A DNA stretch of 64,000 nucleotides from Adineta vaga (GCA_021613535.1 CP075492.1:3038001-3102000); one strand, 5' to 3'. Positions 1 to 37,259 are shown, counted from the stretch's first letter. The notes: generated from the letters alone by a model not told the origin. Program-made: numbers and translations.

Positions 1-1242
1 CAATTAATCCTTGAGGACTATTTAATTGATTAAGATTATTTCCTTGACCATTTCCTCCCGCAACAACAATTCCTTCATTTGCATCTTTTTTCCATTTCAT
101 CACACGATGATTGTCTCGATCTGATACATAGATCGATTGTTCATCATCAACAAACATAAATGTTGGATGATTTAATTGATTAAGTCGATCACCTTTACCA
201 TTTCCACCTGCTAATAACGTTCCTTGTTTCTCACCTATTTTCCATCGTCTTACTTCATTTTTCATACAATCAGAAGTATAAAGAAATCCATCTTTGTCTA
301 TTGCTAAACCACAACAATCAATATTCCCAATAAGAATTTGTGGTTGTAATCTATTTTCATAAAACCATCGACTTACTCGTCGATTTCCAAAATCAGCAAT
401 AATAAATGAACAATTCTTTTTGTCGAAGATCATATCTGTTGGACTATTTAATTGATCAATACGATATCCTTCTCCATTTCTACCAGCAATCATTTTTGCT
501 TTCTTTGCATTATAGTCCCATTGAACAAGACGATGATTTTTAGAATCAACAATATAAATTGTTTGATCTTCATCAATGCAAACTACTTTAGGACTATTCA
601 ATTGGTGTAAATCATTACCGTAAACCCATCCACCAGCTATAGTATTTCCATTCTGTTTCCAATTATTATATTTTAATTCTAAAACCCAAAATAAACGTTT
701 AATTCGATAAGAAACAGAAAAGACATACTTAATGATGATGATCGAATAGAAATTCTATCAATAAATGATTGTGACTGGTATTTAATACAAATCTTTGATG
801 AATCATTAAATTCTTCGATAATTTCTTTTAATTTTTCCTTTAAATGATTTAAATTTATTTCATTAAATTCATTTTCTTGACGAATAACTTTTATTTGTTG
901 ATTGAGCTGGTGAAATTTGTCTTGAATTTCATCGATAAGTAAATCTGTATATTGTGCAAATCGTTTTCGACAATTTTGTGCTGTTTGTTGAATTTTCTCA
1001 ATTGCATCTTTTTCCCATTGGTTTATTTTTTTCATTAATGAAGAATTTTTCGAATTTTCTTTTTAATCAATAATTATTTGTTGAAATTGATTAAAATCAT
1101 TTATCATTTCATCTAATTCTCCATGTAGTACATGTCGATGTTCACCTAAATGTTCATAACAAAATTCTTTAAAACATCCCCGACAAGGATATGTAATTTT
1201 ATCTTTTTCACATGTAGAACACTGTATTTTATTATTTTCCAT
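1..1242 (-). pseudogene. B-box-like/coiled-coil + NHL-repeat protein with one in-frame stop; 3' end runs off the window
   Basis: ATG at 1242 gives MENNKIQCSTCEKDKITYPCRGCFKEFCYEHLGEH (Cys/His B-box-like). In-frame TAA at 1065-1063, then the frame continues into ORF 679..1035. Intron 728-679 (GTATGT..TTTTAG), then NHL repeats (AGGNGKGDRLNQLNHPTFMFVDDEQSIYVSDRDNHRVMKW). Confidence 0.8.
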
Positions 1243-1415
1243 TCTACTTAGTTAAGTATCAAAACGAAAAGAAAATTTATTTCGTATTGAATTCTATTGA
1301 TAGAAAAACAAACAAATAGAAGATCTTTTAACTATTCATATTAAACCAATCAAGCATGATTCCATATTTAATTCATATCTATCCATATTCTCGAAAAGTA
1401 ATGTCATTTCTGTAT

Positions 1416-2868
1416 TCACAAATTCATTAATTCAAATTTTTGTATTCGATGATTGGCCCAATCACTAACATAAAGATTTCCATTGCTATCGAATGATAAA
1501 CTACTAGGAGAAGATAATTGATTTGATTGATTTCCTTGACCATTACCAGCAACAACTATTTCACCCTCTTTACTTCCCTCATACCAACACATTATTCTAT
1601 GATTTCTATTATCTGCGATAAAAATATTATTCCATTTATCGATAAACGATCCACGAGGAAAATATAATTGATTAAGATTATTTCCTTGACCATTTCCACC
1701 TGCTACAATTACACCTTCTGTTGCATCTTGTTCCCATTTCATGATACGATGATTTGAATAATCTGTTACATAAATCGATTGTTCATCATCAACAAAAAGA
1801 TAAGTTGGAGAACTCAATTGATTAAGATGATCACCTTTTCCATTTCCACCTGCTACTAATTTTCCTTTTTCTTCTCCAATTTTCCATCTTTTTACTTCAT
1901 CCTTCTTATAATCAGAAACATAAAGAAATCCATATTTATCCATTGTTAAACAGCAACAATCAATATCATTAATAAGAGTTTCTTGATGATTTTGATTAAA
2001 CCATCGTACAATTCGTCTATTTCCATAATCAGCAATAATTAATGAATGATTTTCTTTATCAATAATCATATCTACTGGACGATTTGGATTATTTCCATTT
2101 TCATCATCGCCGACAATAATTTTACCAAATTTTTCATTCAATTTCCATTCAAGAATTCGATGATTATCAAAATCAGCAATAAGAATTGTATTATTTTCAT
2201 CTATAAGAATTTTTTCAGGTTTTGATAATTGATTTAATAATGTACCTTGTCCATTTCCTCCAACAATTGTCACACCTTGTTGTGCATATTTATTGCATTT
2301 TAATCCTTAAATTAAAAAAAAAAAAACAAAGAAATTTGAATTGATTTCATTTTGAACACTTATTACTAATCGATGATTTGATCGATATTCTATCAATAAA
2401 ACAATGTGATTTTTGCCGAACGAAAATAGTTGATGAATAATTAAATTCGACTTTCGCTTGTTCTAATAGTTGTTTGAGATTATATAAATCAGTTTCATTA
2501 AATTCATTTGTATCATGTATTGCTTTATTATTTTTGAATAAATGATACAATTTTTGTTGAGTTTGATTAACAAATACATTTGTGTATAAAACAGCTTTTT
2601 GTCGACATTCTTCTGCTCGTTTACGGATTTTTTCGATGGATTCTTTTTCCTATTGATTAATTTGTTGAATTAAAGATAAATTATGATTTCCATCAATAAT
2701 TGTTTGTTGAAATTGATTACAATCATTAACAATTTTATCTAATTCACCATTTAATTCTTGTCGATGTTCACCTAAATGTTCATAACAATATCTTGTTGAA
2801 CATCCATCACAAACATATGTGATTTTATCTTTTTGACACATAGAACATTGTATTCTGTTATTAGCCAT
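1416..2868 (-). pseudogene. B-box-like/coiled-coil + NHL-repeat protein, tandem paralogue, with one in-frame TAG
   Basis: ORF 2650..2868 (CxxC..CxxC..CxxHxxxH) ends in TAG where the paralogue has W (INQ*EKE vs INQWEKD), and the frame continues into 2347..2550. Intron 2366-2306 joins it to the intact NHL exon (ORF 1416..2273). Confidence 0.8.
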
Positions 2869-3199
2869 ATTGATATATCTCTGTGATAAGTCTAAAAAGA
2901 TGTAAGATCATTTGATGCATCGAATGTATATGACCTTAATTTCTTCATGAAAAAAAAATAGATTTCATTTTATGACTGTTAAGTTGATTTATTACTCAAT
3001 AAATGTATTTTAACAAATAATTTCATTAAAAACACAACTTTTCAATAGAACGATTTCCACTGATAATGACATCGTACTTTCTTTTCGTTCTTCACACTGA
3101 CACAACACATTTGTTCCCAATCACCAGCTAAGATTGAATTCAGTATCACTAAAAATTCTACTAATTATATTGATCTTATTTATTACCGTTTGTTCATAA

Positions 3200-3417
3200 T
3201 CATCAAAATTTTGACATTGTTTTTCTTTTCTAACGATTCGTTTCCCCAAATTGATTACGATTGGTTGTAATAAAGAAGAATTTGGGTATATTTCTTTTTG
3301 TTCAATAAATTATTAAAATTTCATCTAATTCTCTTTCTATAATTTGCCTTGCTGTTCTTCTAAATATTTGTAGCAAAATTCTTTGAAACAAGGATAGATA
3401 ATTTTGTTATTTTTCAT
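3200..3417 (-). pseudogene. Degraded third copy of the B-box/coiled-coil N-terminus of the NHL family
   Basis: Minus strand from 3417 reads MKNNKIIYPCFKEFCYKYLEEQ..., matching KITYPC..CFKEFCYEHL of the neighbours, followed by stops and frameshifts. Confidence 0.6.
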
Positions 3418-4402
3418 TGTTATATATATATGAAAAGAAGTTCGTATTAGAGTATATCACATAGATGTCATTAACTGTTGATAATGTATAAACAAATCTT
3501 TATAATACTTATATTTTCAAAGGTCGGAAGAAAAAAATCAATCATTTCATCTGACTGACATCGCTCACATGTTTGACTATTAAAGTAATATCCGTATTTA
3601 CTTCATCTCCTATGTAAACACAACCATAATATCGCCGCGACTATCTTTCAAAGTTATTATTCGTCTCAAAAAAATCGTTATAATAGTCTTCTTGTTATTA
3701 GTAGTTTTATTATTATTTTTATTGGCCTTTACATAGTTGTGTAGATTTGTCTTCTAATGTAATTTTATTACTTTTACTATCGGAGTTATGGTGTTATTCT
3801 ATTTGTTTCTAATGCGTAAAGATTTTATTGTTTATTCTAATTTTCTCCTAATAATTAAAATGTGAAAAAAGTATATGCTGAAGATATATTATAAACTTTG
3901 ATAAAATATGTATGGGTGTAATTTATTCACCATGACTCTCACCTCTCTCTTTCGAATTCACTTTCATAAAATAAGAGATAATTAACTGTAAAGGTAAAAA
4001 CCAACTTCAATTTACTTTCCTGATGTACCTCTGTATCGTAGTTATGAAAAACAATTATATATTACTCATTACGATCAATACTTGATGACTTAACTATGGA
4101 TGTGATGAAATTATAGAATAAACAATTTTTATGTTCTTTTTTACTTGCGTCATTATACCAGTATGGAACATTAAATTCATATAGCAGACGAAAAGAAAAT
4201 GGTATTACTTGTTTTGGAAAAAACCCAGCTATTTTATTCTCAACGTCATTTTCTCTGTTAATAAAAGGAGCACAATAAATGGAAACAACTGTACATACTT
4301 TTCATTACCAAAGTTTAACTATTTGTTCATTAATTCATATATTTTTCTTTTTCTTTGGTATTATAATCATTGATTGTGAAATAAAAATACTAAAATAAAC
4401 AA

Positions 4403-5244
4403 ATGGGAAACGGTTGTACAAAAAATTGTTGTAAAAAGAAAGTATCTCCAAAACCTATTTCTAAGACTATTGTTAGTAATGTTGAAATAGGACCAACATA
4501 AATTCCAAATGGATGTTGTTTATCATATGCAGGTAAAAATATTCAATAATATTCGATCCAAACGTCTAAATTGTTTCCATTATAGGTGCATCTGTTGGTG
4601 ATAATCAGTACACTTGTCCAGTTCTTGCTGCACACATCTGGGACAAATCAATAAAGGGTGTAAAAGTCGTAGAGAATGTTTCAGGACCATCTGATGCTTC
4701 GAATACGAACGCAACTACTACTATGATACCAAACACAAATGAGAATGCTGAATATAAAGTTGGAATTAATCATGAAATTCAAATGCTTCCTATTGAAGAT
4801 ATTATTTCAATGAAAATATCCACTGAAGTTAATAAAGCAGTTGAGACAGTAAAATCAGTAGCACTTATACCGTCGCCGCCAACCGAAAAATTAACATGTT
4901 ATCAAAAAATGAAAAATGTCGTATGTTGTAAAAAGAAAAAAAATGAACCAGAACCTAAGTACGATATTAAAACAAAAGAAAAACAAAAAGCAACACGAAC
5001 TATTATTGTTACTATTGAATATATTCGTTATAAAATTGTATTTCATTATTTAAATAATGAAATATTTGATGAAAATGAATATAAAATTCAATTAGAAGAA
5101 TGTGAAACTCTTGCACGTCTTATAGTACAATTAAAAGGTATGAATTCTCATTATCCTAATGAAGAACAACTTCAAAATATTGTTCAACAACATCGTATTC
5201 GTCATTTTGGTCAAATAATCAATCAAGATATTCCAGTTTTATAA
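4403..5244 (+). pseudogene. Uncharacterised two-exon gene with MG-Cys lipidation-like N-terminus and one in-frame TAA
   Basis: ATG 4403 gives MGNGCTKNCCKKKVSPKP...GPT*IPNGCCLSYA with TAA at 4499-4501. A ~53-nt GT-AG intron (~4533-4585) joins in frame to ORF 4723..5244. Confidence 0.55.
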
Positions 5245-6103: not shown

Positions 6104-9100
6104 ATGGACGAGGTATGATTTTGATTTTAATCAAAAGAAACAGAAAAATGTTATTTAGATTGAAATGATTTCTATTCATAATCCAATTCAATCGAACGAA
6201 CGTTCGAATAATGAACAACAAACAACTATTGAAATAGATAAAATCTCAGAGTTACTTTCTGATGATCAAGAAAATTTAGCAGAAGATAAAGAAAACAACA
6301 TGGATGATTTGAATCAAATATCAACATCACCTTGGAATCTGTATGTTTATTTTCATTTTCATCAATGATTCTATTCTTCTTCTTCTTCTTTAAGAGAATG
6401 TTTTGGTTTGAAAATATCAAGTTCAATTATTGGTACTTTTGCATTTTCATTCTTATTACTTGTTATGATGACAATTGGAATCATTATTGTTTATCTCAAT
6501 GTACCAAAACCGAAAGGTTCGTTTTTTTATTATTATTTAATTATAATAAAGAAATTGAATATTTTTTTATTTAATTAAGAATTAAAATGTGAATTAAATT
6601 TCGTAAAAACAAATTCAAATCCAATTGAATATAAATATGGTCCACAATCTGTTGCTATTGGAGATTTTAATGATGATAGTTGGATCGATATGGTTATTTG
6701 TAATTCAATTATTAATAATATTGATATTTATTTTGGATCCATTGATGGAACATTTTCTAAACAATTTCAATATTCAACAGGAATTAATTCCATTCCAATA
6801 ATGGTTGCTGTCAATCATTTAAATAATGATTCTTATTTGGATATTGCAGTGACAAATTATGGAAGACATTCAATTGGAATATTTTATGGATTTGGTAATG
6901 GATCTTTTAAAGATTCAATTGAAATCTCAACAGGAATATCACGACCATTAACAATTCATTTAATTGATTTAAATAATGATTTATTATGTGATATTATTAT
7001 TATTAATTATGGAACAAATAGTTTTAGTATTTTTTATGGAAATAAAAATGAAATCTATTCAAAAGTAATAACATATTCAACTGGTTATGATTCAATTCCT
7101 TATTCATTAACGATTGAAGATTTAAATAATGATTATCAATTAGATATTATTATTGCAAATTATGGAACAAATAATATTGGAATTTTCTTTTCTAATCATA
7201 ATAATTCATTTCAAAATCAAATACTTATTTCAATGGGTATTGATTCTCATCCAACTTCAGTTGCTGGTGGAGATTTAAATTCTGATCAATTTATTGATAT
7301 TGTTGTGACAAATTCTGGTACAAAAATGATATGTGTATTATTAAATGATGGAAATGGAACTTTCTCAAAACAAACATTCTATTCAACAGGTTCAATTTTA
7401 CCATATTCAATTGGAATTGATGATTTTAATGGAGATAATCGATTAGATTTATTTCTTATTAATATTGGAATTAATAATACTGGTTTATTTCTTGGTTATG
7501 GTAATGGAAGTTTTCAAGAAGGAATAATGAATTCAACGGGATCTTCTTCATCGATTTCATTTGTTTTATATGATTTGAATAAAGATAATCGATTAGATGC
7601 AATTATTGTCAATAATGATACGGGAAGTATTGATATTCTTAAAGGTTATTTTGAAGGTTTTCCACCTCGTACAAAGTTTAATGTTCAATATCCACCAATC
7701 TTTGTAATTGTCAGTGATTTTAATAACGATAGAATATTAGATATAATACTTGTTAGTGATGAGAACAATACAATGATGATTCAACTTGGACGTAGTGATG
7801 GATCATTTGAAACTCAAAGAACATATTCAACTGATTCGAATCCAACTTCCGTAGCTGTTGGTGATTTTAATGATGATACGAACATGGATGCAGTTGTTAC
7901 TAATAAGAATAGTAGTAATATTTATGTATTTCGTGGAAATGGAAATGGTTCATTTATAGAACAACAGATAATTTCAACTGGTTCTGGTCCAGTTTTTGCA
8001 GCTGTTGCTGATTTTAATAATGACAATCGATTAGACATCGTTGTTACTAATTATGATGACAATACTGTGAGTATTTTATTAGGATTTGGAAATGGTTCCT
8101 TTGCAAATCAAATGACATATTCAACGGGTTCTAGACCACGATCTGTTGCTGCAAGTGATTTCAATAATGATCATTATCTTGATCTAGTTGTTGTCAATTA
8201 TGGTAATAGAACGATTAGTATCCTTCTTGGTTATGGTAATGGAAGTTTTGCAAATCATTTCACATATCCAATTGGTTATCATCCGTACTTTGTAGCAATT
8301 GGCGATTTCAATAAAGATACTCAAATAGATATTGCTGTTGCCAATTCTGGTAGTAACACTGTGAGTGTTCTGTTAGGATATGGGAATGGAAGTTTCACAC
8401 CGCAAGTCATATATGGAACAGGTACTCAGCCAACATCTATAAGTATTGGAGACATGAATAATGATACACAATTGGATCTTGTTGTGGCTTGCGTCAGTGT
8501 GACGAATATTTATATTTTATTTGGATACGGAAATGGTTCGTTTAGCGATGCAATATCGTATTACACAAGTGTACATTCATATTCTGTTGCCATTGGAGAT
8601 TTAAATAATGATACACGACTGGATATAATTGTAACAAATAGAAATAATACTTTTATGAGTGTATTATTTCAATATAATAGAGGTGCCCTTCTAAATGAAT
8701 TGACATATGCAGCTGGTGGAGGTTCGAAATTACGATCCATAGTCGTTGATAATATAAATAATGATACTCGATTAGATATTATCGTTGCTAATTACGGTAC
8801 TGATGATGTTGGTATTCTTTTTGGACAAGATAATGTTACTTTTCTAGATCAAATAATGTTTAGTATGGGTTCGAATTCTCAACCATCATCCATTACTACT
8901 GGTCATTTTAATGATGATATTTACTTGGATATTGCTGTAGCTCTTTCTGGTCCTAATCAAATTGGATTGCTACTTGGAAATGGCCATGGATCATTTATTC
9001 GTCAAGCTACTTATCAAATTCCTTCCATATTTCCTCCTGTCATTGTTTCCGCTGATGATTTCAATAATGATAGACAATCAGAAATTATTGTTGGGTACGA

Positions 9101-10778
9101 TGACAGTGATACTATTGATATGTACGTTATACACAATACTGGATCTTTTACACTTCATGAAACATATTTAGTTGGTTTACGTCCAATATATCTATGCTTA
9201 GATTATATTAATGCTGATACTTACATTGATATTGTTGTTGTCAATTACGATTCTGACGAATTAAGTATTCTCCTTGGAAATGCTAATGGTAGTTTTGCAC
9301 AAGCATTGACTTATGCAACTAGTGCTCGGCCAAATTCTGTTGCTGCTAGTGATTTTAATAATGATAATCAACGAGATCTAGTTGTTACTTATGGTGGTAC
9401 GAATTATGTGACTATATTGTTAGGATATGGGAATGGTAGTTTTGCAAATCCAATGACATATTCACTTGACTCTGGCTCATTATTTTCAACTGTGGGTGAT
9501 TTCGACAATGATACACAACCAGATCTAGTTGTGGTTGCTGCAAATGGCAACATCGTTTTGTTTCAAGGATACGGTAACGGTTCTTTCTCAAATGGAACTA
9601 AAATTGAAGCTACCGGCAACTCACGATACGTGATTGCAACTGATTTTAATAATGATAGCCGCTTGGATTTTGCTCTTGCTAATTATGGTCCTGATAATGT
9701 AGGCATCTTTATTGGTTATGGCAATGGTTCTTTTGCACAAGAAGTAACATATTCAGTTGATTCCAATCCATTTGCATTAGCAGTTGGAGATCTAAATAAT
9801 GATAATCGATTAGATATTGTTGCAGCTACATTGGGTCATCGTACCATTACTGTCCTTCTTGGCTATGGTAATGGATCTTTTGCAGATAAAACAATCTTTC
9901 CAGTTGGTATTCTGCCAGAATCCGTAGCTATTGGTGATTTTAATCTTGACAGTTTTCCAGATATAATTGTTGCCAATCTTGGTGAAAATTTTGTTAGTGT
10001 ATTGTTAGGATATGGTGATGGAAGATTTGCACCTCAAATTAAATATACAACTGGTTCTGGTGCACAATCTGTGGCTATTTTCGATTTAAATAATGATACT
10101 CAACTTGACATTGTCGTTGCCAATGCAGGTGATTGCAATGTAGTTGTCATGTTTGGTTCCCCAAATTTAGCCTTCAGAAATCAAGTAATGCTTTCAACGG
10201 GTAAAAATTCACGATCAAGATCATTTGTTATTAACGATTTTAATAATGATAATTATACAGATATTATCGTCGCTAATTCAGGTACTGATAATATTGGTGT
10301 TTTTCTTGGATATGGAAATTTCTCTTTCACAAATCAAACAACATATTCAACTGGTAATAATTCTTCTCCATATTCTATTGTGACTGGTGATTTTAATAAT
10401 GATACACAATTAGATATTGTTAGTGCAAATTCAAATTCAGACAATATTGGTATTTTTCTTGGTTATGGAAATGGTTCATTTACAAATCAAACAACATATT
10501 TCACGGGTTCATCTTCATATCCTTATTCTTTAGCTATTAGTCATTTTAATAATGATACAATACTTGATATCATAGTTGTTAATTATAATAATAATAAATT
10601 TGGAGTTTTTCTTGGACATGGTGATGGAACATTTGATAATATCATTTTCTTTTCGATGCCATATGGATCGAATCCATTCTCTCTCATTGTTGCTGATTTT
10701 AGTCAAGATGGAAAAATGGATTTTGTGGTTGCGAATAATGGTACAGACAATTTAAATATTTATCTACAAACTTGTTAA
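6104..10778 (+). CDS. Type II membrane protein with a very large FG-GAP/VCBS (integrin-alpha-like beta-propeller) repeat ectodomain
   Basis: 1362-aa ORF with >20 DxNxDxxxDIVVxN..LGxGNGSF repeats. Upstream exons (6104-6112, 6159-6340, 6395-6516, 6580-) splice in frame and add an acidic N-tail plus one TM helix (SSIIGTFAFSFLLLVMMTIGIIIVYL). Confidence 0.9.
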
Positions 10779-11050
10779 TATTTTTTCTTAATTATTCTAA
10801 TAAATCTTTGAAGCACAGTTGTATGATTATATAGATGCAATATTCAAGATTGAGTAGTCGATTCGAATTGACGAACTATAAATAAGGGCACACTGACGAC
10901 CGACTACGAGACGAGCAATTTTGATATCGATTATATAACAATTTGTCATTAAAAAGATTCGGTTTATTTTCATAATAAATAAATTAAAGAAAGAAAGAAT
11001 ATAATCATATTTCTACTAGACTAACTAAATCTATCAAATTATTATATTTA

Positions 11051-12244
11051 TTATAAGTTCTGTTCATAGGGAGTACAAGTAATTCCCGAAGGATGTTCAT
11101 AATAACTACATCGAACAGTCGAATTGCCACTAGGAGCAACAATATTCCAATTGGTAAACATTAAATTACAAATACCCAAAGGTGGACAATCAATTCTTGC
11201 AACAACAGGATCATATCTTTTCGAAGTTTTTCCAATTAAATCTTTGAACTTGATATCAACTAATTGAGCAGTTGATGGATATTTTTTACAAATCATTGGA
11301 TCTGTTTCATAACAATTATCAACTTGAAGAGCATAATCACAATTGTCAATTAGAATATTTTCATATGTAACATTTTTAACACTAACAGTTCCATAAGATG
11401 GACCACCTGGATAAAATTTAATTCGAGTTGCAACTATCGAATTGATCATAGTTACATTTGATATAAAAATATTTTGAACAATATAATTTCGTTGAGATTC
11501 TAATCCAAGACTTCCAACTGATAAACCATGAGATCCATTACATGTGATATTATTAACAAAAATATAATTTGAACCATTTTTAAATGAAATACAATCATCA
11601 CCATTTGTAACATGAAGATTCTTTATTGTTACATATGAACAATCACCTGTATCAAAACCATCAGTATTTGCAGGTCGATTTGATGATGTTGATATCGCAC
11701 TTAGACTTAAATCAGAAAATTCAATATTTGTAGAATTATTTGTGACAAAGAAAAACCAAAATGGTGAATTGATTATTTTTAATTTCGTAAAAATTATATT
11801 CGAACTATTATTCATTTGTATCAATAAAGGTCTTTGATAACTTTGATTACGAGCAAAATAATCCCAATAACTTTGTCCATTTCCATCAATTAATCCTGAA
11901 CCAGTTAAAGAATAAAATGTTCCTCTAATAACATTTGATAAAAGCAAAAACGCTGTTTTGCCTTCCCAATATTGAAGATCATCAGATATTTTAAGAATTC
12001 CTTCAATTTGAACGAAACAATGAAAACATTCTTTAAAATCTAGAGGACTTCGAATCATAAATATTTCACCAGCAGGAATAATAATAGTCCCTCCATTTCC
12101 ACACAGTGATAAAGCTTTACTAATTGCCGGTACATCATCAATCGAACTATTTCTTGCAGATGAAGGTGTACAAGTTTTTCCATTTATTAATGAATAATAA
12201 TGGAATAAAATTAACCAAAAAAGTTTTTCTTTATACATCAACAT
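11051..12244 (-). CDS. Secreted GH28 polygalacturonase (pectinase)
   Basis: Signal peptide; all four GH28 motifs present (NTDG, GDD, SHG, RIK); intronless. Confidence 0.93.
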   Translation of the reverse strand: MLMYKEKLFWLILFHYYSLINGKTCTPSSARNSSIDDVPAISKALSLCGNGGTIIIPAGEIFMIRSPLDFKECFHCFVQIEGILKISDDLQYWEGKTAFLLLSNVIRGTFYSLTGSGLIDGNGQSYWDYFARNQSYQRPLLIQMNNSSNIIFTKLKIINSPFWFFFVTNNSTNIEFSDLSLSAISTSSNRPANTDGFDTGDCSYVTIKNLHVTNGDDCISFKNGSNYIFVNNITCNGSHGLSVGSLGLESQRNYIVQNIFISNVTMINSIVATRIKFYPGGPSYGTVSVKNVTYENILIDNCDYALQVDNCYETDPMICKKYPSTAQLVDIKFKDLIGKTSKRYDPVVARIDCPPLGICNLMFTNWNIVAPSGNSTVRCSYYEHPSGITCTPYEQNL

Positions 12245-12370
12245 GTTTTACTTTCGAATGATAAATGATATTCTTATCTTCTTATTTTTATTCTACACGA
12301 ATAAGAAAGAATGTAGAAGATAAAATTCTTGAATAGATATGGGAGAAAAAAGAATGTTTTTCTTTCTTCT

Positions 12371-13686
12371 TTAAATTGAATTATAAAAAACGTGTCCCGG
12401 ACCAGCTGATATTATTTGATATTGACCAAATGTATTTGGTGAATATGTTGTAAAAACTAAGATATATTTAATATCCGATCGAAGTACAGCTGTTACTTGA
12501 AATTGACGTGAATCACCAGTATCATCATCTTGCCCGAGAAGATTAATTGATTGAGCAAATGGATAAAAATTACCTTGATAAATATAACCATAGGTATCAA
12601 GAGAACTTGAACTTTTGAATGAATATGTTCCGGTTACATTCACACGTATTTCAATTGCTTGATAATAATGTGGTCCAGACGAAGTTCCATTACGATCATA
12701 AAAAGAATTACTTGATGTTAATTGATTAAAATAATTGGAATTCATTATTGGCGCACGAGTTGTTGTTGTTGTTGTTGTTGTTGTTGGATTTATTGGATAA
12801 AAATAAACATTATCTGGACCATCAGCAATAACTGAAAATGGTCCTGTTATACCTGGTCTATGTGTTGTCACAACTAAGACATACGGATGACCAGCTTCAA
12901 GATAAACTGGTATTTTAAATTGACTATTAGATGAACCATCATCATTATAAGTTATTAAATTTAATTGTGGATTTGATGGATTAAATGATCCATTATAAAG
13001 GTATCCATGTGTATCTATGTTACTTATACTTGATAGATCATAATAACCTGATGTTTGAACATATAATTGAAGAGCTTCATAATAATGTCCATACTGATTA
13101 CTTTCTGGACGAGTGTATAATCCATCTGTAGATGATAATGAACCTGTATAATTCGAAATAACATTTGATTGGTCAGTTGTTTCATAAACTAAAAGAAAAA
13201 TAATCAAAATAATTCGATTAATATTATGATTCTAACTATAAACCTATTCCTGATGGACATGCTTGTTCACCAGTCAGTGATAATGGATAACATATTGATT
13301 CCAAAGAATTACAATTTGGATGACGAATACAAACTTCATTTGATAGACAAACATCATTTGGTTGTTGACATACACGAAATTGTGAACAAGAATTATCAAT
13401 TAATCCACAAACAAACGTTGAACTTGAAAATGAATATTGTAAACATCCACATCGAGTACTTTGTGAACATGGACTATATTGATATTGATTTCCATCTCGA
13501 CATGTTTGACAATTTATATTTACTAAAAACGAGAAATTTCATTCATTTTGTCGATAAAAAAAAGAAAGAAATTCGTTTACTTGTCAAACTAAAATTAAGA
13601 AAAACAAATTTTATTCAAGTAAATCGTTTCTTCTTTTTGTTTTACCTTAAAAGAACAAGAAGAGAATGAAGATTTATTCTTAACAT
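12371..13686 (-). CDS. Secreted protein: Cys-rich domain + two tandem PPC-like beta-sandwich domains with a Thr linker
   Basis: Spliced model: signal peptide MLRINLHSLLVLLSLT (needs 8-nt microexon 13581-13588), Cys-rich exon (CQTC..CGC..C..C..CIRHPNC..CYP..CP), then ORF 12371..13207 with two DT(H/Y)GY(L/I)Y...(N/D)DD repeats. Confidence 0.75.
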
Positions 13687-14138
13687 TGTTGTATTCAAAT
13701 GAAATTATCCAAGATATTAGAATTCGATCATTTATATAGCTGTGATTTTAAGTCAATATATAATCTGTTGATTCGATCGGACTCTTTATATTTGTTTTGT
13801 GATTTTATTTCAATGTTATCGTCTCAAATATTATATTTTATATTTATTTTCCTATACAAAATTCCATCTCATTATCCTATTCAAATAATAAGTAGATCCA
13901 ATTTCAAATATTTTTGTCAGTTTTTTATTTCTAAATCTCATCAATGAAAAGAATATTTTCGTAGAATTATATGGAATTGTTCGGATCATGTCTTCTAAAC
14001 TTTTTTTTGTGAAAATAGCATTTATTTTTTCAGGATAAATTTTATTTTTCTAAATGTTCTATTGCGTGATTAATATAGATGAAAGAAAAAGACAAATAGA
14101 CAATGAATTTTTCAAGTAAATAAATGTGTTGAAGAATA

Positions 14139-15068
14139 TTAATGGGAACATCCAGTAATATCAATTAATTCACGTGGACAATCAACTTTTGAATAAGTCA
14201 TTGTAGGATTATCAGCACCTTTAAACCAATCAAAACGAAAGAAACATCCATCACGAATTTGTTCGGGAAGAGAAGAACATTCATCACGAGAATTTACACC
14301 ACCATGTCGTTGACCCCAACCATCATTTGGTGCATTCCATTGTGAAGAACATCCGTTAAAGATTCCTACGCCACCACCAGGAATTTGTAAATCAAATTGA
14401 TGATCAGCTACATCTTTTCCACTATTTGTAACTTGAACAATCATTGATTTGCCTCTAACTGGTTCACTAGTAAAATCTAATTTATAACAAGAACAACATC
14501 GATCTTGTTCATTCACACCTGGAATAGTTGCAGCTGCAAATCCATAAGCTAATTGCTCATTAATTGCCCATGGTTTTTGATTATTACAAGTAAAAGAATA
14601 ATCACCTTCACCACCATCATGACATCCACTTCTTGCGTGTGGATGATCAAATACAGAATATCCATCTTGACGACAACTTTTAACATAAATATTATTTCCG
14701 GATACATTTTCATCCCAAGCACAACTTGGTTTACAACAATCCCAATATCGTGTTGTTTTTCCCGGTTGTGAAGGTACATTATCTATAACACCACAAACCA
14801 TACTTCGATCATCTGTTGGAACAGCATTCTCTTTCGAAATAGCACCTTGTTTCATCCAACAAGTTCCACCATTATGAGTTGTCCATGTAAAATGAGTACA
14901 ACCTGATGTTGAAGCACATCTACCACCACAATCTTCACCACGAATTTGAACATTCATTAGATTATTTTCATGAAAATCACAAGCCAATGCCCAGTTTCCA
15001 TTCCATTCGATAGCAGATGTATGATAAATAATAAATAGACACACAACAAGCAACGCTAAAGATGACAT
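14139..15068 (-). CDS. Secreted PAN/apple-domain + GH45 endoglucanase (cellulase)
   Basis: Signal peptide; PAN-like module (CDF..CGGRC..GCTHFTW..GTCWMK); GH45 signatures TTRYWDCCKPSCAW and FDLQIPGGGVGIFNGC; intronless. Confidence 0.93.
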   Translation of the reverse strand: MSSLALLVVCLFIIYHTSAIEWNGNWALACDFHENNLMNVQIRGEDCGGRCASTSGCTHFTWTTHNGGTCWMKQGAISKENAVPTDDRSMVCGVIDNVPSQPGKTTRYWDCCKPSCAWDENVSGNNIYVKSCRQDGYSVFDHPHARSGCHDGGEGDYSFTCNNQKPWAINEQLAYGFAAATIPGVNEQDRCCSCYKLDFTSEPVRGKSMIVQVTNSGKDVADHQFDLQIPGGGVGIFNGCSSQWNAPNDGWGQRHGGVNSRDECSSLPEQIRDGCFFRFDWFKGADNPTMTYSKVDCPRELIDITGCSH

Positions 15069-15705
15069 GTTTTGGATATGTTTCGTACTATTTTTCTCGT
15101 TCCTTTTATATAGAAAATTAGATATGAGGTGGGAAATTTTTCACAAAATGACCTTATGCTCGTTGTTGTGGTTACAAAATGAATAATATTCTCTTTCAAT
15201 ACATAACAGACGTCGAATGGAAAATTTTAGTTCTGACTAGGCAGAATTGAAATTGATATTTTATAATGAAAAGAAGACGAAGAGAAAGATAGGAAATCTA
15301 CACCTCTTTTGTTTTTAGTGAACCATATCCATTAGTATGTTATATTGGAAATTTTTGGATATATGCTTGTTCTCGGTCAGTAGTTGTACGGTAGGAAGAG
15401 GAGACCTCAAACTTTGCAATAAGAGCTCAGTCAGTTAGAGCGCCATGGGCTTTACCGAAAGTACATGTACTATATATTATCGCCATTCAGTGCTCATCCT
15501 CACCCTCACCCTCACACCTTCATTTATTGAGGCCAATCAGGTTACAGCAGACTTTTATCATCAAGTATCTTTCGTACTTTAGATGAGAAACAAGTGATCG
15601 AAGGAAAAAAAACGCTTTTCTTTATGATGAAGAAACTAATTAATAAGAGAAGATTTTTATTCATCTTATTTTCCTCTAATCGTTCTTATGAATTTGATGT
15701 TTGTT

Positions 15706-16738
15706 TCAGATAGATTCAACAAATAAATTCATTTGTGGAGTTATTTGATTAATATGTTTCGATAAACATAACATTTTCAAATAATGTTTCACTTGACGAC
15801 GAAATCGTGATGATATGATCAAAAACAAATAAAAATTTATCTAAAAAAAGAAAGAACAAGAAAACTTTCCAAAAGAACTGAAATATCCTTACTGAAAAAT
15901 TCATATATAACAATGAATAGAAGATTGAACCAATGAGAAGTGTAATCGTTGATTTAATATCATTATTTTCATTAACATGAAGATTTAATTGATATAATGT
16001 TATAATAATATAAGGAAAACCAAAGATAATTAACGATAAAATTCTAATTAAAATCATTGCTGTTAATTGTTGATCAAGTCGACGACGAATTAATCGAGTT
16101 TGTCTTCGAATTATACGACGAACATTTACATAGGATAAGAAACTAAATGTTATTGTTATTAATAATGGAAATGCATTACTTAAAATTGGATAATAAAAAT
16201 ACGAGAAATATTTTTTGATTCTTTCATCATAAATTGTACATCCCAATGAAAATTGACGAATTTCTGAATAGATTACAAATAATATTCCATGAGAAAATGA
16301 TAAACCGAGGTTAAAAATTAGAAAATAATAAACTGATTTCATTGTACTTAATTGACGAAGATAATATCGAGGATTTGTAGACAAATATTGATCAATTGTA
16401 GTAAAACATATCGTAAATAATGAACATAAACCGAAAAATTGAGAAAAACCTGAACGAATTTTACACCATGCAATTGAAGTTAATGTTGGATCAAACTTTA
16501 AAATATTCGTTAATAAACGTGATGAACAAATAAAAATTAATAAACCAATATTAAAATAAGATTCAATGATTAAATATAAACTTGAAGGACTTTTACGAAA
16601 GATTTTCACATTTGTTAAAATGATTATTAAAGAAATATTACTTATTAAACCGAGGATCATATTAAATAGACCAAAGATAAAACGAATATCATTAGTTATA
16701 TCACGAAGATAATTGATTGTGGAATTTATTGATGACAT
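15706..16738 (-). CDS. Orphan rhodopsin-like 7TM GPCR
   Basis: Seven hydrophobic segments, WCKIR before TM3, TIDQY in the DRY position. A short 3' intron (FS|gtaag..tttag|) gives INFYLFLIISSRFRRQV...ESI*. Confidence 0.85.
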
Positions 16739-17466
16739 TTATTTTCTTTTCTTATTATTAAACACCACGTAAACAGCAGAATGCGTCTTTCTATGAGATT
16801 GTGTTGAGATACATTTTAAAAAAATCAACGGAATTTACTAAAAGCTCATTCATTTTTTTGTCTTTTGAGTTTGTTTGACTCAATGACGTTTAGTTTTTGC
16901 TTCATTTTTAAATTCAATTAAGATATAGAGGATAATTTCATAGGATAGATTACATTTTTTTAAATTAATTCTTGGTTCATAAATAATGTTATTAAGAAAA
17001 TCCTTTTGAAATTAGATTCTAGATCAGGTTAATTACAAGTGAAGAAATGAGAAATTGTATTATATTCTTTCGTAATTATTATTAAAAGAATCGAATAGAT
17101 CAACAATATTATCTATGATCAGATGTACCTTTGATTATATGGAAAGAAGATCATATAGACATTTTCCTTTGTGTAATATGATACGATATTGGATTATAGA
17201 AAGATTTTTAAAATTTCACAAAGATTCAGAATATTTCGAATGATTATTGTTTAACAATAAATTTTAGAAATTAGAATATCATACCCGCCGGCGTGTGGAT
17301 TAGATATGAAGGTGTGGGTGCTCCTTCGGTCATCATTCTTCACATTCACACTCTCTTCTCTTATATAGAGATAATTGGATTAGATGTGGGAAAAACAAGG
17401 AAAAGTCAGAAAATGACCAATCGGAAAACGAATTGATCTTGCTCGTCTTTTCGGTTAAGGAAACTT

Positions 17467-17470
<4 letters not shown>

Positions 17471-17496
<26 letters not shown>
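17471..17496. repeat. (CT)13 microsatellite upstream of the expansin-like gene
   Basis: Seen directly; the mirrored copy near 49312-49322 is only about (AG)5. Confidence 0.9.
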
Positions 17497-17497
<1 letters not shown>

Positions 17498-17720
17498 GCT
17501 ACATAACAGACGTGGAATAAGAAATATTTTGTTTCTCACCCATAGCTATATAAATGTTCGAGAGATAGTTCGTTCATCATTCTTACATCAACAAGAAAAT
17601 AGGTCAAGCATCATTTTAACTGTAAGTAAAAATAAATGAAAATTGAATCAATTGATTACCATCGAATATAGAAAATCATTTTTATTCAATTTAGAATCTG
17701 TTTCTCCATCGAACAAAACT

Positions 17721-18650
17721 ATGCATGAAAGTTGTACGATGATGATTTTTGTGCTATATGCAGTTTTGATGAGTTCTTTATCAGGTCATGTTATGAAGCG
17801 TAGTATTGAATGGACGGGAAATTGGGCATTGGCTTGTGATTTTCATGAAAATAATCTAATGAATGTTCAAATTCGTGGTGAAGATTGTGGTAGTAGATGT
17901 GCTTCAACATCAGGTTGTACTCATTTTACATGGACAACTCATAATGGTGGAACTTGTTGGATGAAACAAGGTGCTGTTTCGAAAGAGAATGCTGTTCCAA
18001 CCGATGATCGAAGTATGGTTTGTGGTGTCAATGAAAAAGAACCAATAAATGAAGTAATGAATGATGTTCATACAACACGTCATGGTGCTACTGAATATGG
18101 AGCATGTGCACTTCCAGCATCAGATTATGCAGTTACTAATCCAGTTGCACTGGGAAATATTGAATCATTGAAAGCTCTCAAATTTCGTCCTGAATTATGT
18201 GGTCACATTCTTAATGTTGATTGTGGTCATGGATCATTAGATATTATTGTAACAAATTCAAATTTAGGAGGTGGTCTTGATCTCTATGGTTCAACTTGGG
18301 ACAAACTTACAAATAATAAACCACCTGGAATAACTTCATGTAATGTTAAATTAGCTGATCGTAATGCTTTCCAATTTGATGGTCCTCGTTGTTATTACAA
18401 TCCTGGCAGTCCAATTGACAATGCTTATTATAAAAATATTGGACTTTTAAATACAAATGGTCGTCTAGTTGTTAAAGCAACAATTGATAATCAGTCTGGA
18501 GTACATCAGGGAACTAATCCTTATTATGCATTTAATTTTGGTCCAATCGATGAAAATAAACAAGTTATATTTACTTTTGAAGATGGAAATACTCATTCAG
18601 TTTTCTTACGTGATTGTCAAAAACAACAAAATCAACAAAGATGGAGTTAA
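17721..18650 (+). CDS. Secreted PAN/apple-domain + expansin-like (DPBB + C-terminal CBM63-like) protein
   Basis: Signal peptide; same PAN module as the GH45; GACALP, CGHILNVDC, IIVTN..GGGLDL fit an expansin/DPBB domain 1, followed by an aromatic-rich beta domain; TATA-like TATATAAA near 17547; intronless. Confidence 0.75.
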   Translation: MHESCTMMIFVLYAVLMSSLSGHVMKRSIEWTGNWALACDFHENNLMNVQIRGEDCGSRCASTSGCTHFTWTTHNGGTCWMKQGAVSKENAVPTDDRSMVCGVNEKEPINEVMNDVHTTRHGATEYGACALPASDYAVTNPVALGNIESLKALKFRPELCGHILNVDCGHGSLDIIVTNSNLGGGLDLYGSTWDKLTNNKPPGITSCNVKLADRNAFQFDGPRCYYNPGSPIDNAYYKNIGLLNTNGRLVVKATIDNQSGVHQGTNPYYAFNFGPIDENKQVIFTFEDGNTHSVFLRDCQKQQNQQRWS

Positions 18651-19871
18651 AATGAAACTTCATTAGAAAGTTCAATAATTTGTTTTTTTTGTCTACCTTT
18701 TTCTTGTAGAACATCTTATTGGTTCAGAAGATAATAAACTACACGTAGATGATAATAATGATATCTCTTTCTGTTATGAATTGTTCTAATCGATTTAACA
18801 ACCTTATCAAACTCTTTAGCAAATTAAAAATAATGACAGTATTCTTCTCGATTCTCAGTCTATGTCATTATAAGTTTTTTATTCAAATTAGATCGACATG
18901 ACAAAAGAATGTAATAATCATTATATTTAATTCAAGTTAATAAGTGATTTTTATCTGCATGAATAAGATGAATAAAGAATCTCAAGAGAATTTATTGAAT
19001 GTCTGAATGAACCAAATAACAACATTGTTATAGTTAGTAGATTATGTGATACGATTACCTATCTTTCGATTATTTTGATTCATATTTCAAAGAATACGAG
19101 GACATAAGAACAATCTGCTTTGTTTTCATACCGACTTTATCTGACGAAAAGTCATTTTACATGCTTGTTGTGTAATTGCGTTTTTATTATTATCTTAAAT
19201 ATCAAAACTGGCAGAATATTTGTCAAATACAAGAAATGTATCCTATTTCATTATGAAAAGCTTGGTTTTCTATGCCACAAAGTTATTTAGTGCATCTATT
19301 ATTATAGTGGTAAAACTTCGATCATACTAATCTATATCAAAGAAGGATATCCGAGTGTAAGTCTTGGTTTCGAGATGGTGTTATATTAGTTTAGTTGTTA
19401 CCAGTTGCACCTTTTAAGATTGATAATACGTATCTAGACTGTTCTTCTAAATAAAACCACTGACCACGTCTATTGTTTGAATATTTCGTTATTATTGGTA
19501 TTGAATGAACTAGCATACAGATTAAAGTTTGTAAAGCCAGAGCTTCACAAAGATTTCTCAATGATGACCAGTGGAGAGAAACGCTTTATACTATTGGTAA
19601 TCAGCTCAACAGATACAATATCTCAACATCCATCTTATGGTGTTATTATCCTTTTTCATTCTTAAAAAAAACATATTAGAGGACCTCCTTCTAGATTTTC
19701 GATATCGAAACATGATACAAAAACAAGAATCTTTTAAACTAGAGAGAGGTTATAAACCTTACGTTTTCAGAACAATAGAAATATGATTGAAAAACAAATA
19801 AAAATGAGTGAAATATTTTAAAGTATATATAAGTATTGTTATTATCAATTGGGAATTTGATTTTACATATT

Positions 19872-21658
19872 TCAATAATGTGCACTGACGACAAATGCAT
19901 TGGTCTTGGGAGTTGGAATAGTGCTTTTCAAAAAACAGTAGGTAGCAACCGTTCCAGCTGACAGCATAGCCCATGTGTACCCAAGACACTTTGTATTTGA
20001 TAGACATAAATCACAACAGCTGCTAAAAGTGGTGCCGTTGATCATTAATAAATCATAATACTGCATGTCAAAACCAATTAGAATCGTCATATTACTACAT
20101 ACATATGGATTTGATGTTGTACCTTTAATCAAAATAAATCGTAATTAGGATAGAATATCACAATTATCTCACTTGTGGTTAAAGTTGTCGTGGTTTTCGT
20201 CGTCATCGTTGTTGTTGTCGTTGGAAGCGTGATCGTGACTGTAGTGGATGTTTGGGTCATTGTTGTAGTTGTGGTTGGAAGCGCTGTTGTTGTTGTCGTT
20301 GGAAGCGTTGTTATGACTGTAGTGGTTGTTTGAACTGTCGCTGTTGCTGTTGTCGTTGGAAGTGTGATCGTGACCGTAGTGGATGTTTGGGTCATTTTTG
20401 TAGTTGCTGTAGTTGTGGTTGGAAGCGCTGTTGCTGTTGTCGTTGGAAGCGTTGTCATCACTGTAGTGGTTATTTGAACCATTGTTGTTGATGTCGTCGG
20501 AAGTGCTGCCGAGACTGTAGTGGATGTTTGGATCGTCGTTGTTGTTGTATCGGTAGTAATGGTTCGATTGACTGATTCAAAAACCAGTTCAGTATTTAAT
20601 ATGATACCGTTGGTGAATGATATTCGAAAATTAACTAGCCGTTGGGCTGATTCAATCGTAAGAAGCATGCGTTTTGTGAAATGATCGTTGCAAATTTTTA
20701 CACCACCGCATGTAGGTGGATATTTTATTTCGAATTCAATTACAAAGAAATCGTCAGTTTCATTGGTTACATTATTGTTTACGGTATTGCTGAAAGAAAT
20801 ATAGAATATTTAAATATTCAGTGTGAAAATCAGTACTAAAAGTGCAAAAAACTTCAAATTATGGAATTATCTGAAGTGAAAAATAGATTGATTAAATCAA
20901 AAATATATCAATATGACGAACTAGTCTACCGTTCATAGATTCATCAATTACAATTAAAGTGTCTGAATTTTGTAAAAGACGACTCATGTCTACACTTTTT
21001 TAACGAACACGTCACAATTACGAAAATTTTCGATGTAGAACTACAATAGAAAGCTTAAATAGTATAGAAAAATAGTTACATTTGTCGCTTTCGCTTAGTA
21101 AAAATAAGACTTTGGATGAATCGTGCCGAAAACACTCGAATAATATTTTTGGATGCACTATACTTTTGAGCAATCTTCCAAGAAAAAATGAATAAAAATA
21201 TTTTGCAAACGTCTAATATCTTTCATTACCTGATTCGCCAGATCTGTCAAATCTGTTACAGTAAGTGAATCATTACTGATGATATTCGATTTATAATTGA
21301 GATTGAAAGGAGCAGAATCTAAACAAATAAGAAAATATTTCATACATTTTATTCTTGTCCTTATTTCCGTAGCAAAAACAAAACAAATATTTACTGCAAA
21401 ATGTTGCTGTGCGGATAGTTCAGTCAATTAAAGATGTATTTATACTGTTAACTACGTACCTGAATCATCAGTAAACTGCGTCGTTGGACTTTCCGTTAAC
21501 GTTTCTCTGGGTAAATATACAAATATAAAGCCAACACATACTGCTAGAATCCATAATATAAATACGCATAAAAGAATGCGATTAACAATCGATTTGATGA
21601 TATTGGTAAAAGTAACTTCTTCAATCTCAATATTCAGTAGATTTCTTAAGATTTCCAT
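19872..21658 (-). CDS. Type II membrane protein with mucin-like Thr-rich stalk and C-terminal PAN/apple domain
   Basis: TM exon (ORF 21452..21658), further exon(s), Thr-rich ORF 20129..20668, short intron, then a PAN-type domain (C..FD..YDL..CCDLC..CLGYTW..YCFLKS). Confidence 0.7.
20175..20555 (-). repeat. Coding tandem repeats of the Thr-rich stalk (LPTTTT / QTSTTVTIT units)
   Basis: Recurrent gttggaagcg and gtagtggatgtttgg motifs on the + strand. Confidence 0.85.
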
Positions 21659-22325
21659 TCGTTTTATTTATACGTCGATTTTATCTAATGAATGTAATTT
21701 TGTACTGAAATGAAACAAAAAGAACAAATGGTGAACATCGTAAAATTAGCGAAATGTTATTTTCAAAAAATCTATCTTTCTCTTTTGATATATTGATAAA
21801 AGAAAAGAACGGTGAGTTTTGAAAGAATAACTTTGGATGTTTTTCTTTGATGCAAATGAAAGAATACAACGCATGCGTCATATTTGCGAATTTCGCCTCG
21901 CGCATTTCATATCTACTCGCTAACTACCTTGTTGGTAACTCATTTTTGTTATTGATGTGAAATAAAAAATAAGTAATGTATGCATCAATCGATTTGCTCT
22001 AGTGAGTAAAGAGAGAGCAATTTTTCTCTTTCCTTCTAGTTTATCGTATAGGTGAGTGATTAAATTTATTCTTATAATTGATTTGATTTTTATGGAAAAT
22101 CACGCATGTTTTAGTTTTTAATAATATCTCAATTAATGACATATTCTTTATTTTTTTATCTCAGTCGTGAAAAAGTGATTTCTCAAAGTTTATACGAACA
22201 GTCGCTGTGAACAAATTAGCGAAAAAATCAGCCATTCATAAACATGAACCCCTGCGTTTCGAATGTTTGTTCTATAGTTAAAAATTATGTTATAGTTTTT
22301 GAAAAGAGTTTTATTTGAAAAAGAA

Positions 22326-23549
22326 TTATTCATTGATCTTCATCTTAATAAGATCTTCAATCGTTGTTGTTTGAATTTTTGAAAGTTTTGGATGAATTTT
22401 ATTAAATGGTTTTTCAAAAAATCCATCACCTGAAATAGCCAATGAAAATTTTTCTATATCAAATTCAAAGTTTTGTTATTAACCTCGTGCATAAACTGAT
22501 TTAACAAATTCTGAAACTTGTTCATATAATTGTTCCGAAGTAAGATTTTGATACGATTGATTTTCAATAAATTCAAAACTCTACTTAGAAAAAGAATAAA
22601 AATAAAATAATGAATAAAGATCTTTTAACTTGTCCTGTCATTTGTTGAGCAATCTCATAAATTTCGTTAAATGTCGTTGTAAAACTTGCCAGATCAATTC
22701 GTGCATTTTTACATTCCTCAAGTAAAATAATATCAGGTAGAAGTAATGCAATATCATTCGAATATGTTGTAGAGATTTTCATATTTGAAGGGCCAAAGAA
22801 TTGAATTTTTCGTTGTTTTAAATCAATTCCAAAATAGGGAGTAAAAAGAAAATCTTAATGAAATATTTTTCTTTTGATAAAAACGAAACGATTTCGAAAG
22901 AAGAAGAAAAATCAAACCTGTGAATAATCCAGTTGCAATGAATGTATGTTCAATTGATGAATCTTGTTCTAAAAGTTTTTGAATCTCTTGTTTTGGTTTA
23001 TAATAATGACATTCATTTTCTCTAAAGAAAAACGTTTGAGAAATGAATAAATGTGTAAACATTAACGAACTTAATTCGAGATAATTCCATTCCATAATCT
23101 GATGTAATAAATCTTTTTACATGAGCTTTTTTTGATGCTTCAATCAGAGATTTTTGTCCATTGAAGAGAACTTTTTGATCATTACCAGTTAAAAGACAAA
23201 TAACAATATCAATTCCTTGAAGAGCCTATTCAAAAAAAAAGTTTTAAAAAAATCAATTTAATTTTTCTAATAAAACCTACTTTTTCCAGTCCAATAGGAT
23301 CATCAAGTTCACCTTCAATAAGTTTTGCACCTTGTTTTTGAAAATCTTGAAAAATTCTCTTTTTTTCTTCATTCTAAATAAACAATTTGATTACAACTAT
23401 GTTCCATCTTTCAATTCTCAAACCTTCATTGATTCTTTCGAAATCAAAATTGATAAATTAAATTCATCTTGTCGTTTAAGAAAACTATTTGTTACTTTTA
23501 TTCCAAGAGCTTTACCACTAGCTCCAACAATCATTATATTCTCGCACAT
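22326..23549 (-). CDS. NmrA/isoflavone-reductase-like NAD(P)-binding protein, copy 1
   Basis: Mirror of 35806-37032: IMIVGASGKALG Rossmann start, ALQGIDIVIC, VKRFITSDYG; six short introns. Confidence 0.8.
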
Positions 23550-23752
23550 TTTATCTTAAACAAATAACGGTCATCTATGAGATTCACTGATCTTTTCCTG
23601 AAAGAATTCTACTTCAAAAACAGAAGTGCTACATCCTCATTGGCCTCTCCTATCTTACCTATAGAATATATAACCACGTGGTGAATACATATATCTTATC
23701 TATATAGTCATGTTTTTCTCTCTCTTTTCTGTCCTTGAAGTGCGAATAAGAA

Positions 23753-37204: not shown

Positions 37205-37259
37205 GATACTACTACAAATCTCAAATAATGACATCAGACATCAACGATCAGTTCGCCGC

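Follow-up and report, generated by a model that had tools for sequence, protein, structure and literature searches.

A 64,000-nucleotide (nt) stretch of chromosome 3 of Adineta vaga, a bdelloid rotifer (C3:3038001-3102000, 3.04-3.10 Mb; hereafter the window) holds a 12.5-kb segment in which genes encoding a PAN-fused GH45 cellulase, a PAN-fused expansin-like protein and a GH28 pectinase lie among genes for a PPC-like protein, a G protein-coupled receptor (GPCR) and a very large FG-GAP repeat protein. We read this segment, with a probability of about 0.7, as a mosaic within a chromosome region that is dynamic and rich in foreign genes, made up of an old GH45-expansin pair, a PPC-like/GH28 tandem and bystander GPCR and FG-GAP genes, all caught up in a recent inverted duplication. 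Recurrence of the cellulase-expansin pair in Rotaria, another bdelloid and a springtail supports a non-random neighbourhood of these two genes. A first-pass annotation of the same DNA had named all six genes, and Pfam searches and structure models confirm each of them at or near the place it was assigned (Table 1).

The cellulase matches Pfam Glyco_hydro_45 with 231 bits against a cut-off of 27 (E 2e-68) and carries a PAN domain in addition. Alignment with Humicola EGV (2ENG, E 5e-65; also 1HD5) reveals retention of the motifs TRYWDCCKPSC and FDLxIPGGGVG. Both catalytic aspartates of GH45, which in Humicola EGV belong to the motifs YWDCC and FDL, are present in the window protein. PMC6509783 groups bdelloid and tardigrade GH45 with chytrid fungi, cites Szydlowski et al. 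2015 for horizontally acquired bdelloid cellulases, GH45 and others, and refers to literature describing beta-1,4-glucanase activity of A. ricciae GH45, an activity reported for that protein and not for the window gene. With the ascomycete-like GH28 described below, this literature placement bears out the non-animal affinity that had been proposed for the enzymes. The window genes are further paralogues of the known bdelloid cellulases and XghA-like GH28 proteins, with which they share both enzyme family and host animal. A closer kinship of the window GH45 with its Folsomia counterpart than with A. vaga paralogues was considered and dropped, since PAN-less paralogues, located on C1 and C5, show the same degree of similarity (49-56% versus 51-55%).

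The expansin half of the neighbouring PAN protein (~200 residues) yields no Pfam match at E values up to 1, and a family profile searched against PDB sequences retrieved no expansin at E values up to 10; the same type of profile search gave weak matches of the PAN-expansin family to lectin-type apple domains. Fold comparison proved far more informative. With 40 relatives as input, the AlphaFold model reaches a pLDDT of 88 overall and 94-98 over the C-terminal half, and its 12 best Foldseek matches are exclusively expansins of bacteria, fungi or plants (E 7e-10 to 8e-6), with alignments that span both domains (~200 columns, target TM-score 0.56-0.70). The expansin call, made originally by eye, is thereby upheld: judged by its modelled fold, the C-terminal half of the protein is a two-domain expansin, which we term expansin-like as it stands outside curated sequence families. 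The model shares with microbial and plant expansins (EXLX1, e.g. Bacillus subtilis 3D30) a fold of two domains, DPBB-like D1 and beta-sandwich D2, over ~200 residues, but the window protein lacks detectable sequence similarity to them. It differs also in architecture, as the window family bears an N-terminal PAN module whereas known expansins have either no added module or a CBM. A nearly invariant Asp lies in the family's GGGLDLY (LDL) motif, and may correspond to the essential D1 Asp of EXLX1.

This family is small: among 1.84 billion protein representatives, HMMER recovered only 127 representative clusters. Members with ~50-57% identity come from bdelloids, Brachionus, the springtail Folsomia, Hydra, Ephydatia (a sponge) and a record assigned to Romanomermis; those with 30-40% identity come from chytrid fungi, Leptophrys (an amoeba that feeds on algae), one marine protist and Contarinia, a gall midge. 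In the Leptophrys vorax relative a CBM1 occupies the place of PAN. A tree of the expansin domain splits the main animal PAN group from a chytrid/protist/Contarinia group by a 100/100 branch and does not resolve relations among the animal lineages; vertical descent with losses and horizontal spread are both possible histories. Searchable literature on animal expansins covers plant-parasitic nematodes and a whitefly DPBB-only protein and no others, and the animal list of a 2025 paper consists of nematodes plus its own whitefly protein. The nematode expansin-like effectors belong to plant parasites, whereas the hosts of the window family are free-living rotifers together with a springtail, Hydra and a sponge. 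In the chytrid Entophlyctis luteolus, three tandem expansin-like genes (locus positions 221-4835) are without PAN and have no GH45 nearby; joint transfer of GH45 and expansin from a chytrid, a scenario we had entertained, gains no support from this locus.

Linkage of PAN-GH45 with PAN-expansin extends beyond A. vaga. In Rotaria sp. Silwood1 the two genes are convergent and 734 bp apart, and a contig from another bdelloid in ENA has three copies of the expansin and a GH141-like gene after a single GH45. In Folsomia candida, PAN-GH45 (-) and PAN-expansin (+) are arranged head-to-head, 646 bp apart; both genes have introns, and genes for lipases and other hydrolases are their neighbours on a contig of 15.5 Mb. 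A. vaga displays the same divergent pair with the GPCR gene inserted between its members. PAN-expansins with no GH45 neighbour are found in R. socialis, at C3:3.336 Mb of A. vaga and on metagenome contig Ga0209930_1001247, and the A. ricciae expansin contig stops 556 bp upstream of the gene. A metagenome scan of 23 loci, most of them too short, returned no further GH45 linkage.

The PAN modules of the paired genes have a history of their own. In four species, PAN modules of neighbouring genes share 82-95% protein identity within a species and 58-72% between species, and in the window the two modules are nearly the same DNA (Table 1). Because identity is higher within the pair than between species, this pattern indicates recurrent gene conversion, a domain-level concerted evolution that we deduce from sequence comparison. 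It resembles concerted evolution of a module shared by adjacent paralogues, with PANs closer within than between species in four lineages; it differs in that the tract is a single domain carried by two genes that otherwise differ and whose catalytic parts share a distant relationship at most, and in that the pattern is seen in two animal phyla. The literature open to search contains no description of the GH45-expansin linkage, the shared PAN or the inverted duplication. The same PAN type is fused to GH9 (metagenome proteins), to GH16 (Rotaria and a metagenome protein) and to GH45 of the tardigrade Hypsibius, and among small invertebrates may generally serve glycoside hydrolases of foreign type as a module for substrate binding.

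A second conserved pair comprises the PPC-like gene and GH28. The GH28 protein matches Pfam Glyco_hydro_28 (E 4e-56, 191 bits), and its best solved relative is the Aspergillus endo-xylogalacturonan hydrolase A (XghA; PDB 4C2L, E 4e-109). Alignment with XghA shows the NTDGFD, DDC and GSHG motifs conserved, with RIK in place of the GIK of XghA. Outside rotifers the closest proteins are ascomycete enzymes (46-50% identity), and an A. vaga endo-xylogalacturonan hydrolase-like paralogue, 67% identical to the window GH28, is already in UniProt (B3G4R3). The PPC-like gene consists of an open reading frame (ORF; 12371-13207, -) and a conserved Cys-rich exon upstream (~13300-13522), indicating a gene with an intron. 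Its product has zero Pfam matches, PF04151 included. An AlphaFold model (pLDDT 91) displays two beta-jelly rolls, for which Foldseek returned the tandem collagen-binding (PPC-type) domains s3a-s3b of ColG (5IKU, E 9e-6) and the N-terminal jelly rolls of DeCLIC (E 3e-6); a protein feature search placed PPC clusters at 0.87-0.89, a weak lead. The modelled structure thus agrees with a PPC/collagen-binding-domain jelly-roll fold, a binding-type domain. By sequence the family is confined to bdelloids, where it is fused to many other modules, and the domain has at least 148 matches in the A. vaga genome.

The PPC-like stop codon and the GH28 start codon are 126 nt apart (12245-12370), with an AATAAA ~45 nt before the GH28 ATG; given this short spacing, the two genes may form an operon-like pair. 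In A. ricciae the orthologous PPC-like gene directly precedes GH28 on the same strand at a distance of 44-147 nt, TIR genes flank the two, and GH45, expansin, GPCR and FG-GAP genes are all absent within 10 kb of that locus. The order of PPC-fold gene and GH28 is therefore a tandem pair kept within the genus Adineta. Another PPC-like locus of A. ricciae lacks GH28 and has NHL genes like those on the left flank of the window. The GH28 genes of A. steineri and of the ENA bdelloid have glycoside hydrolases of other families (GH5, GH35) as neighbours. A TIR-domain gene (61576-62487, -) just beyond arm 2 of the inverted duplication shares 74% identity with TIR genes found immediately before PPC-like and GH28 in A. 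ricciae. There, the TIR/PPC-like/GH28 unit is in tandem duplicate (TIR at locus positions 391-1293 and 6701-7603), with the GH28 of one unit truncated.

The remaining two genes are of a different character. The FG-GAP ORF (6690-10778, +) encodes 1362 residues with 22 FG-GAP_3 stretches (Pfam, E 2e-144). An upstream exon (6387-6517; exons translated singly) encodes a hydrophobic helix of ~23 residues, consistent with a product that is probably a type-II membrane protein. FG-GAP repeats number 803 first-look candidates in the A. vaga genome, many of them in ORFs of ~1400 residues. The GPCR matches 7tm_1 over residues 34-274 with 36.4 bits against a cut-off of 30.5, and its family numbers 652 first-look candidates, of which 137 were scored and all 137 were significant. 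With hundreds of genomic matches for the GPCR, FG-GAP and PPC-like families, the presence of these genes at the locus is unremarkable, and we infer that rearrangement placed the GPCR and FG-GAP genes here as bystanders, each an ordinary member of a very large bdelloid family. No GPCR relative was found between or beside the GH45/expansin pair in Rotaria, the ENA bdelloid contig or Folsomia, nor by the GH28 of A. ricciae; ~6 kb downstream of the Folsomia expansin there is an annotated 7tm_1 gene, to which the A. vaga GPCR gives no match at E 1e-4. Between GPCR and GH45 sits a telomere-like repeat, (TGAGGG)3, at 15492-15515 (-), mirrored in arm 2 at 51275-51298, for which 0.01 matches are expected by chance. 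In bdelloid chromosome ends such repeats mark old breakpoints, and we read this one as the scar of an old breakpoint or insertion.

The assembly to which the window belongs comprises 100.8 Mb in six contigs at ~29% G+C, and base composition at the locus is 72% A+T. According to PMC8494291, which reports this chromosome-level A. vaga assembly (AV20), 2,679 candidate foreign genes account for 8.3% of genes and are enriched towards chromosome ends; chromosomes 1, 2 and 3 are homoeologous to 4, 5 and 6, with chromosome 6 the homoeologue of chromosome 3. Chromosome 6 was examined as the site of a second cluster and set aside, as C6:1.04 Mb has only the PPC-like gene and C6:0.345 Mb a different PAN-GH45 (32-33% identity) by FG-GAP genes.

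The second copy noted in the first-pass annotation is present within the window itself, as an inverted repeat of 12.8 kb (6149-18921 versus 60574-47888) with 98.1% identity. A further arm stretch, 22154-25136, matches 37204-34219. ORFs of all six genes are intact in either arm, with 1-40 nucleotide differences per gene. Between the arms is a 9-kb unique centre with NAD-binding, nucleoside-hydrolase and cupin genes, and the outer flanks of the two arms are unrelated, with identity at the outer ends falling gradually from 98% to 92% to 82%. Arm 2 has ~7.4 kb of extra sequence, measuring ~10.7 kb (37204-47888) where arm 1 has 3.2 kb.

Table 1. Positions of the genes and modules discussed, numbered from the first nucleotide of the window
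Feature	Coordinates	Strand	Remarks
FG-GAP/VCBS-repeat gene	6104-10778	+	small 5' exons, then one 4.1-kb exon
GH28, endo-xylogalacturonan-hydrolase-like pectinase	11051-12244	-	intronless, hydrophobic N-terminus
PPC-like gene	12371-13694	-	Cys-rich exon plus two predicted PPC-fold jelly-roll domains
PAN-GH45 endoglucanase	14139-15068	-	intronless
PAN module of GH45	14773-15012	-	~95-97% DNA identity to PAN of the expansin gene (17804-18043)
Rhodopsin-type GPCR	15749-16738	-	Pfam 7tm_1
PAN-expansin-like gene	17721-18650	+	PAN module, predicted DPBB-like D1 and CBM63-like D2
NAD(P)H-binding gene	28700-29356	+	palindrome centre
Inosine-uridine nucleoside hydrolase	29353-30384	-	palindrome centre; 4-nt overlap with NAD(P)H-binding gene
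Cupin	30574-31053	+	palindrome centre
Arm-2 expansin	48159-49088	-	intact ORF
Arm-2 GPCR	50055-51044	+	intact ORF
Arm-2 GH45	51722-52651	+	intact ORF
Arm-2 PPC-like	53560-54390	+	intact ORF
Arm-2 GH28	54513-55706	+	intact ORF
Arm-2 FG-GAP	55979-60067	-	intact ORF

Several lesser features accompany the duplication. The three genes of the palindrome centre (28700-31053) are tightly packed and bacterial-looking. The extra DNA of arm 2 contains an internal direct repeat (39133-40322 versus 45303-46796, 77-94% identity) and ORFs without Pfam matches, and is probably transposon-related; short telomere-like repeats (TGAGGG/TGTGGG variants) at 38156-38173, 38765-38787 and 46831-46853 sit in this arm-2-specific insert at the edges of repeated elements. 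A region private to arm 1 includes a PAN-domain fragment (19872-20132, part of 19872-20668, -) beside an ORF of 179 residues with internal tandem repeats; the fragment may be a decayed PAN gene. On the left flank (7-2868), NHL-repeat genes form a diverged tandem duplication (7-1242 versus 1649-2868, 71% identity).

The first-pass annotation had gone beyond gene identities to propose that the six genes make up one functionally assembled, possibly co-regulated module, with the GPCR sensing wall fragments, the FG-GAP and PPC-like proteins binding, and GH28, GH45 and expansin degrading. The six genes are real, closely packed and intact in both copies, GH28, GH45 and expansin plausibly share a substrate class, and the PPC fold is that of a binding-type domain. 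Nevertheless, we consider such a module highly improbable. Synteny in relatives, the check that had been suggested, recovers the PPC-like/GH28 and GH45/expansin sub-pairs but no six-gene block: the six-gene order is absent at every other locus examined, namely in A. ricciae, the chromosome 6 paralogue loci, Rotaria, the ENA bdelloid and Folsomia. The notion that the enzymes act as a linked set is likewise sustained in part, as GH45 and expansin recur together in other animals but GH28 does not join them at the other loci examined. Five GH28 and approximately six GH45 genes at other A. vaga loci never adjoin each other, the expansin paralogue at C3:3.336 Mb and the closest PPC-like paralogue (C6:1.04 Mb) are solitary, and no partner genes were found at the other A. 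vaga GH45/expansin loci (C1, C2, C5 and C3:16.3 and 16.9 Mb). No locus holding the pair has a GPCR relative, the Folsomia 7tm_1 gene being unmatched, and in A. vaga the telomere-like repeat parts GPCR from GH45. Families with hundreds of matches make it easy to fit a functional story afterwards; moreover, with 623 glycoside hydrolases reported for the first A. vaga assembly (PMC4498783), several chance adjacencies between such genes are expected per genome. Assembled contigs from four runs tell weakly in the same direction. Over the 6-kb stretch compared, which excludes GH28 and FG-GAP, GH45 has transcript-like contigs in all four runs, two of them ending 37 nt past the stop codon, and expansin in two of four. 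The 3' half of the PPC-like gene has none in any run, and neither does the GPCR, for which only 19-21-nt fragments appear in runs that include GH45. These contigs give no support, at this weak level of evidence, to co-regulation of the GPCR. Finally, the segment is similar to the polysaccharide utilization loci of Bacteroidetes in that glycan-active genes stand side by side with surface-protein genes. Differences from those loci are substantial: the window set has neither a SusC/SusD-type pair nor a conserved sensor, nothing points to an operon for the set, relatives do not conserve it, its genes are eukaryotic, on both strands and with separate starts, and nothing similar to the transport or regulatory parts occurs at the locus.

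Some observations weigh against a mosaic with bystanders. Placement of GH28 within 2 kb of GH45-expansin is improbable, for these two particular families, by a rough estimate (<1% if placed independently in ~40 Mb), and some selection for this linkage in A. vaga is possible. FG-GAP genes recur near the pair's relatives at two other loci, a circumstance that favors the module: a large FG-GAP gene is directly upstream of PAN-expansin on contig Ga0209930_1001247 (3692-6870), which is probably bdelloid, and on A. vaga chromosome 6 FG-GAP genes adjoin the different PAN-GH45. Given the size of the FG-GAP family, both cases may be coincidence. The four runs are RNA by guess, as judged from gene-restricted, transcript-like contigs from which levels are not measurable, and low expression of the GPCR would be missed. 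Orientation of the GH45/expansin pair also varies among lineages, so a shared promoter cannot explain its linkage. That variation, together with variable spacing, fits a further alternative in which the pair was never inherited as a unit and arose anew in each lineage, for example by an expansin landing next to PAN-GH45 and capturing its PAN exon. Near-identical PANs within a species would result equally from recent exon capture, unlinked PAN-expansins exist in R. socialis, at C3:3.336 Mb and on Ga0209930_1001247, and the bdelloid PAN is also fused to other glycoside hydrolases, GH9 and GH16 among them. We regard convergent linkage of this kind as unlikely, however. The PAN-linker-domain architecture and its boundaries are identical in all lineages, animal PAN-expansins are one group set off by the 100/100 branch from the chytrid/protist group, and capture would have been needed at least three or four times, each time beside a GH45. 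Descent of PAN-GH45 and PAN-expansin as one anciently linked cellulose-attack cassette, possibly horizontally mobile, common to bdelloids and springtails and perhaps to other small animals of fresh water and soil that have the PAN-expansin (Brachionus, Hydra and Ephydatia), with linkage kept and PANs converted, is a serious but tentative proposition to which we assign slightly less than even odds.

Could the second copy be an artefact, with two haplotypes joined into a false palindrome and the cluster single per haploid genome? The arms differ by ~1-2%, near allelic divergence, and PMC8494291 both ascribes palindromes of the A. vaga assembly of 2013 to faulty scaffolding of phased haplotypes and reports that uncollapsed haplotigs lie for the most part towards the ends of chromosomes. 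A mis-join of this type nonetheless appears improbable here: the two outer flanks share no sequence relation, a gene-containing unique centre parts the arms, arm 2 has its additional sequence, and identity at the outer ends decays stepwise. On sequence grounds, this combination fits better with a real, ageing inverted duplication.

The mosaic reading suggests how the locus might function and how it could have formed. Hydrophobic N-termini are seen in the ORF translations of GH28, GH45 and the expansin-like protein, and the three are probably secreted digestive proteins. GH45 and the expansin-like protein would be released into the gut lumen, where the latter is predicted to loosen cellulose microfibrils without hydrolysis and GH45 to cut the beta-1,4-glucan thus exposed, in putative synergy. 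The PAN (apple) module plausibly would act as a carbohydrate- or surface-binding module, as CBM1 does in Leptophrys vorax, and GH28 would trim xylogalacturonan-type pectin. GH45 and expansin stay linked in several lineages, with their PANs repeatedly homogenized by gene conversion; rearrangement would have brought in the GPCR and FG-GAP genes, and a recent inverted duplication would have doubled the entire segment.

Foreign-type cell wall enzymes of bdelloids have long been known, and the enzymes described here are not new in themselves. Apparent glycoside-hydrolase islands in A. vaga call for cross-species synteny before they are read functionally. The PAN-fused expansin-fold family, which Pfam misses and which rotifers, a springtail, Hydra and a sponge possess, would extend the range of animals with wall-loosening proteins beyond plant-parasitic nematodes. 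Concerted evolution of PAN in every lineage examined offers a natural system for the study of domain-level conversion between differing neighbors, and expansin beside PAN-GH45 in two phyla is a test case for whether cooperating digestive genes are kept linked or transferred together. If true, the cassette would represent a rare instance of carbohydrate-enzyme microsynteny across animal phyla, along with an animal expansin family that Pfam does not detect.

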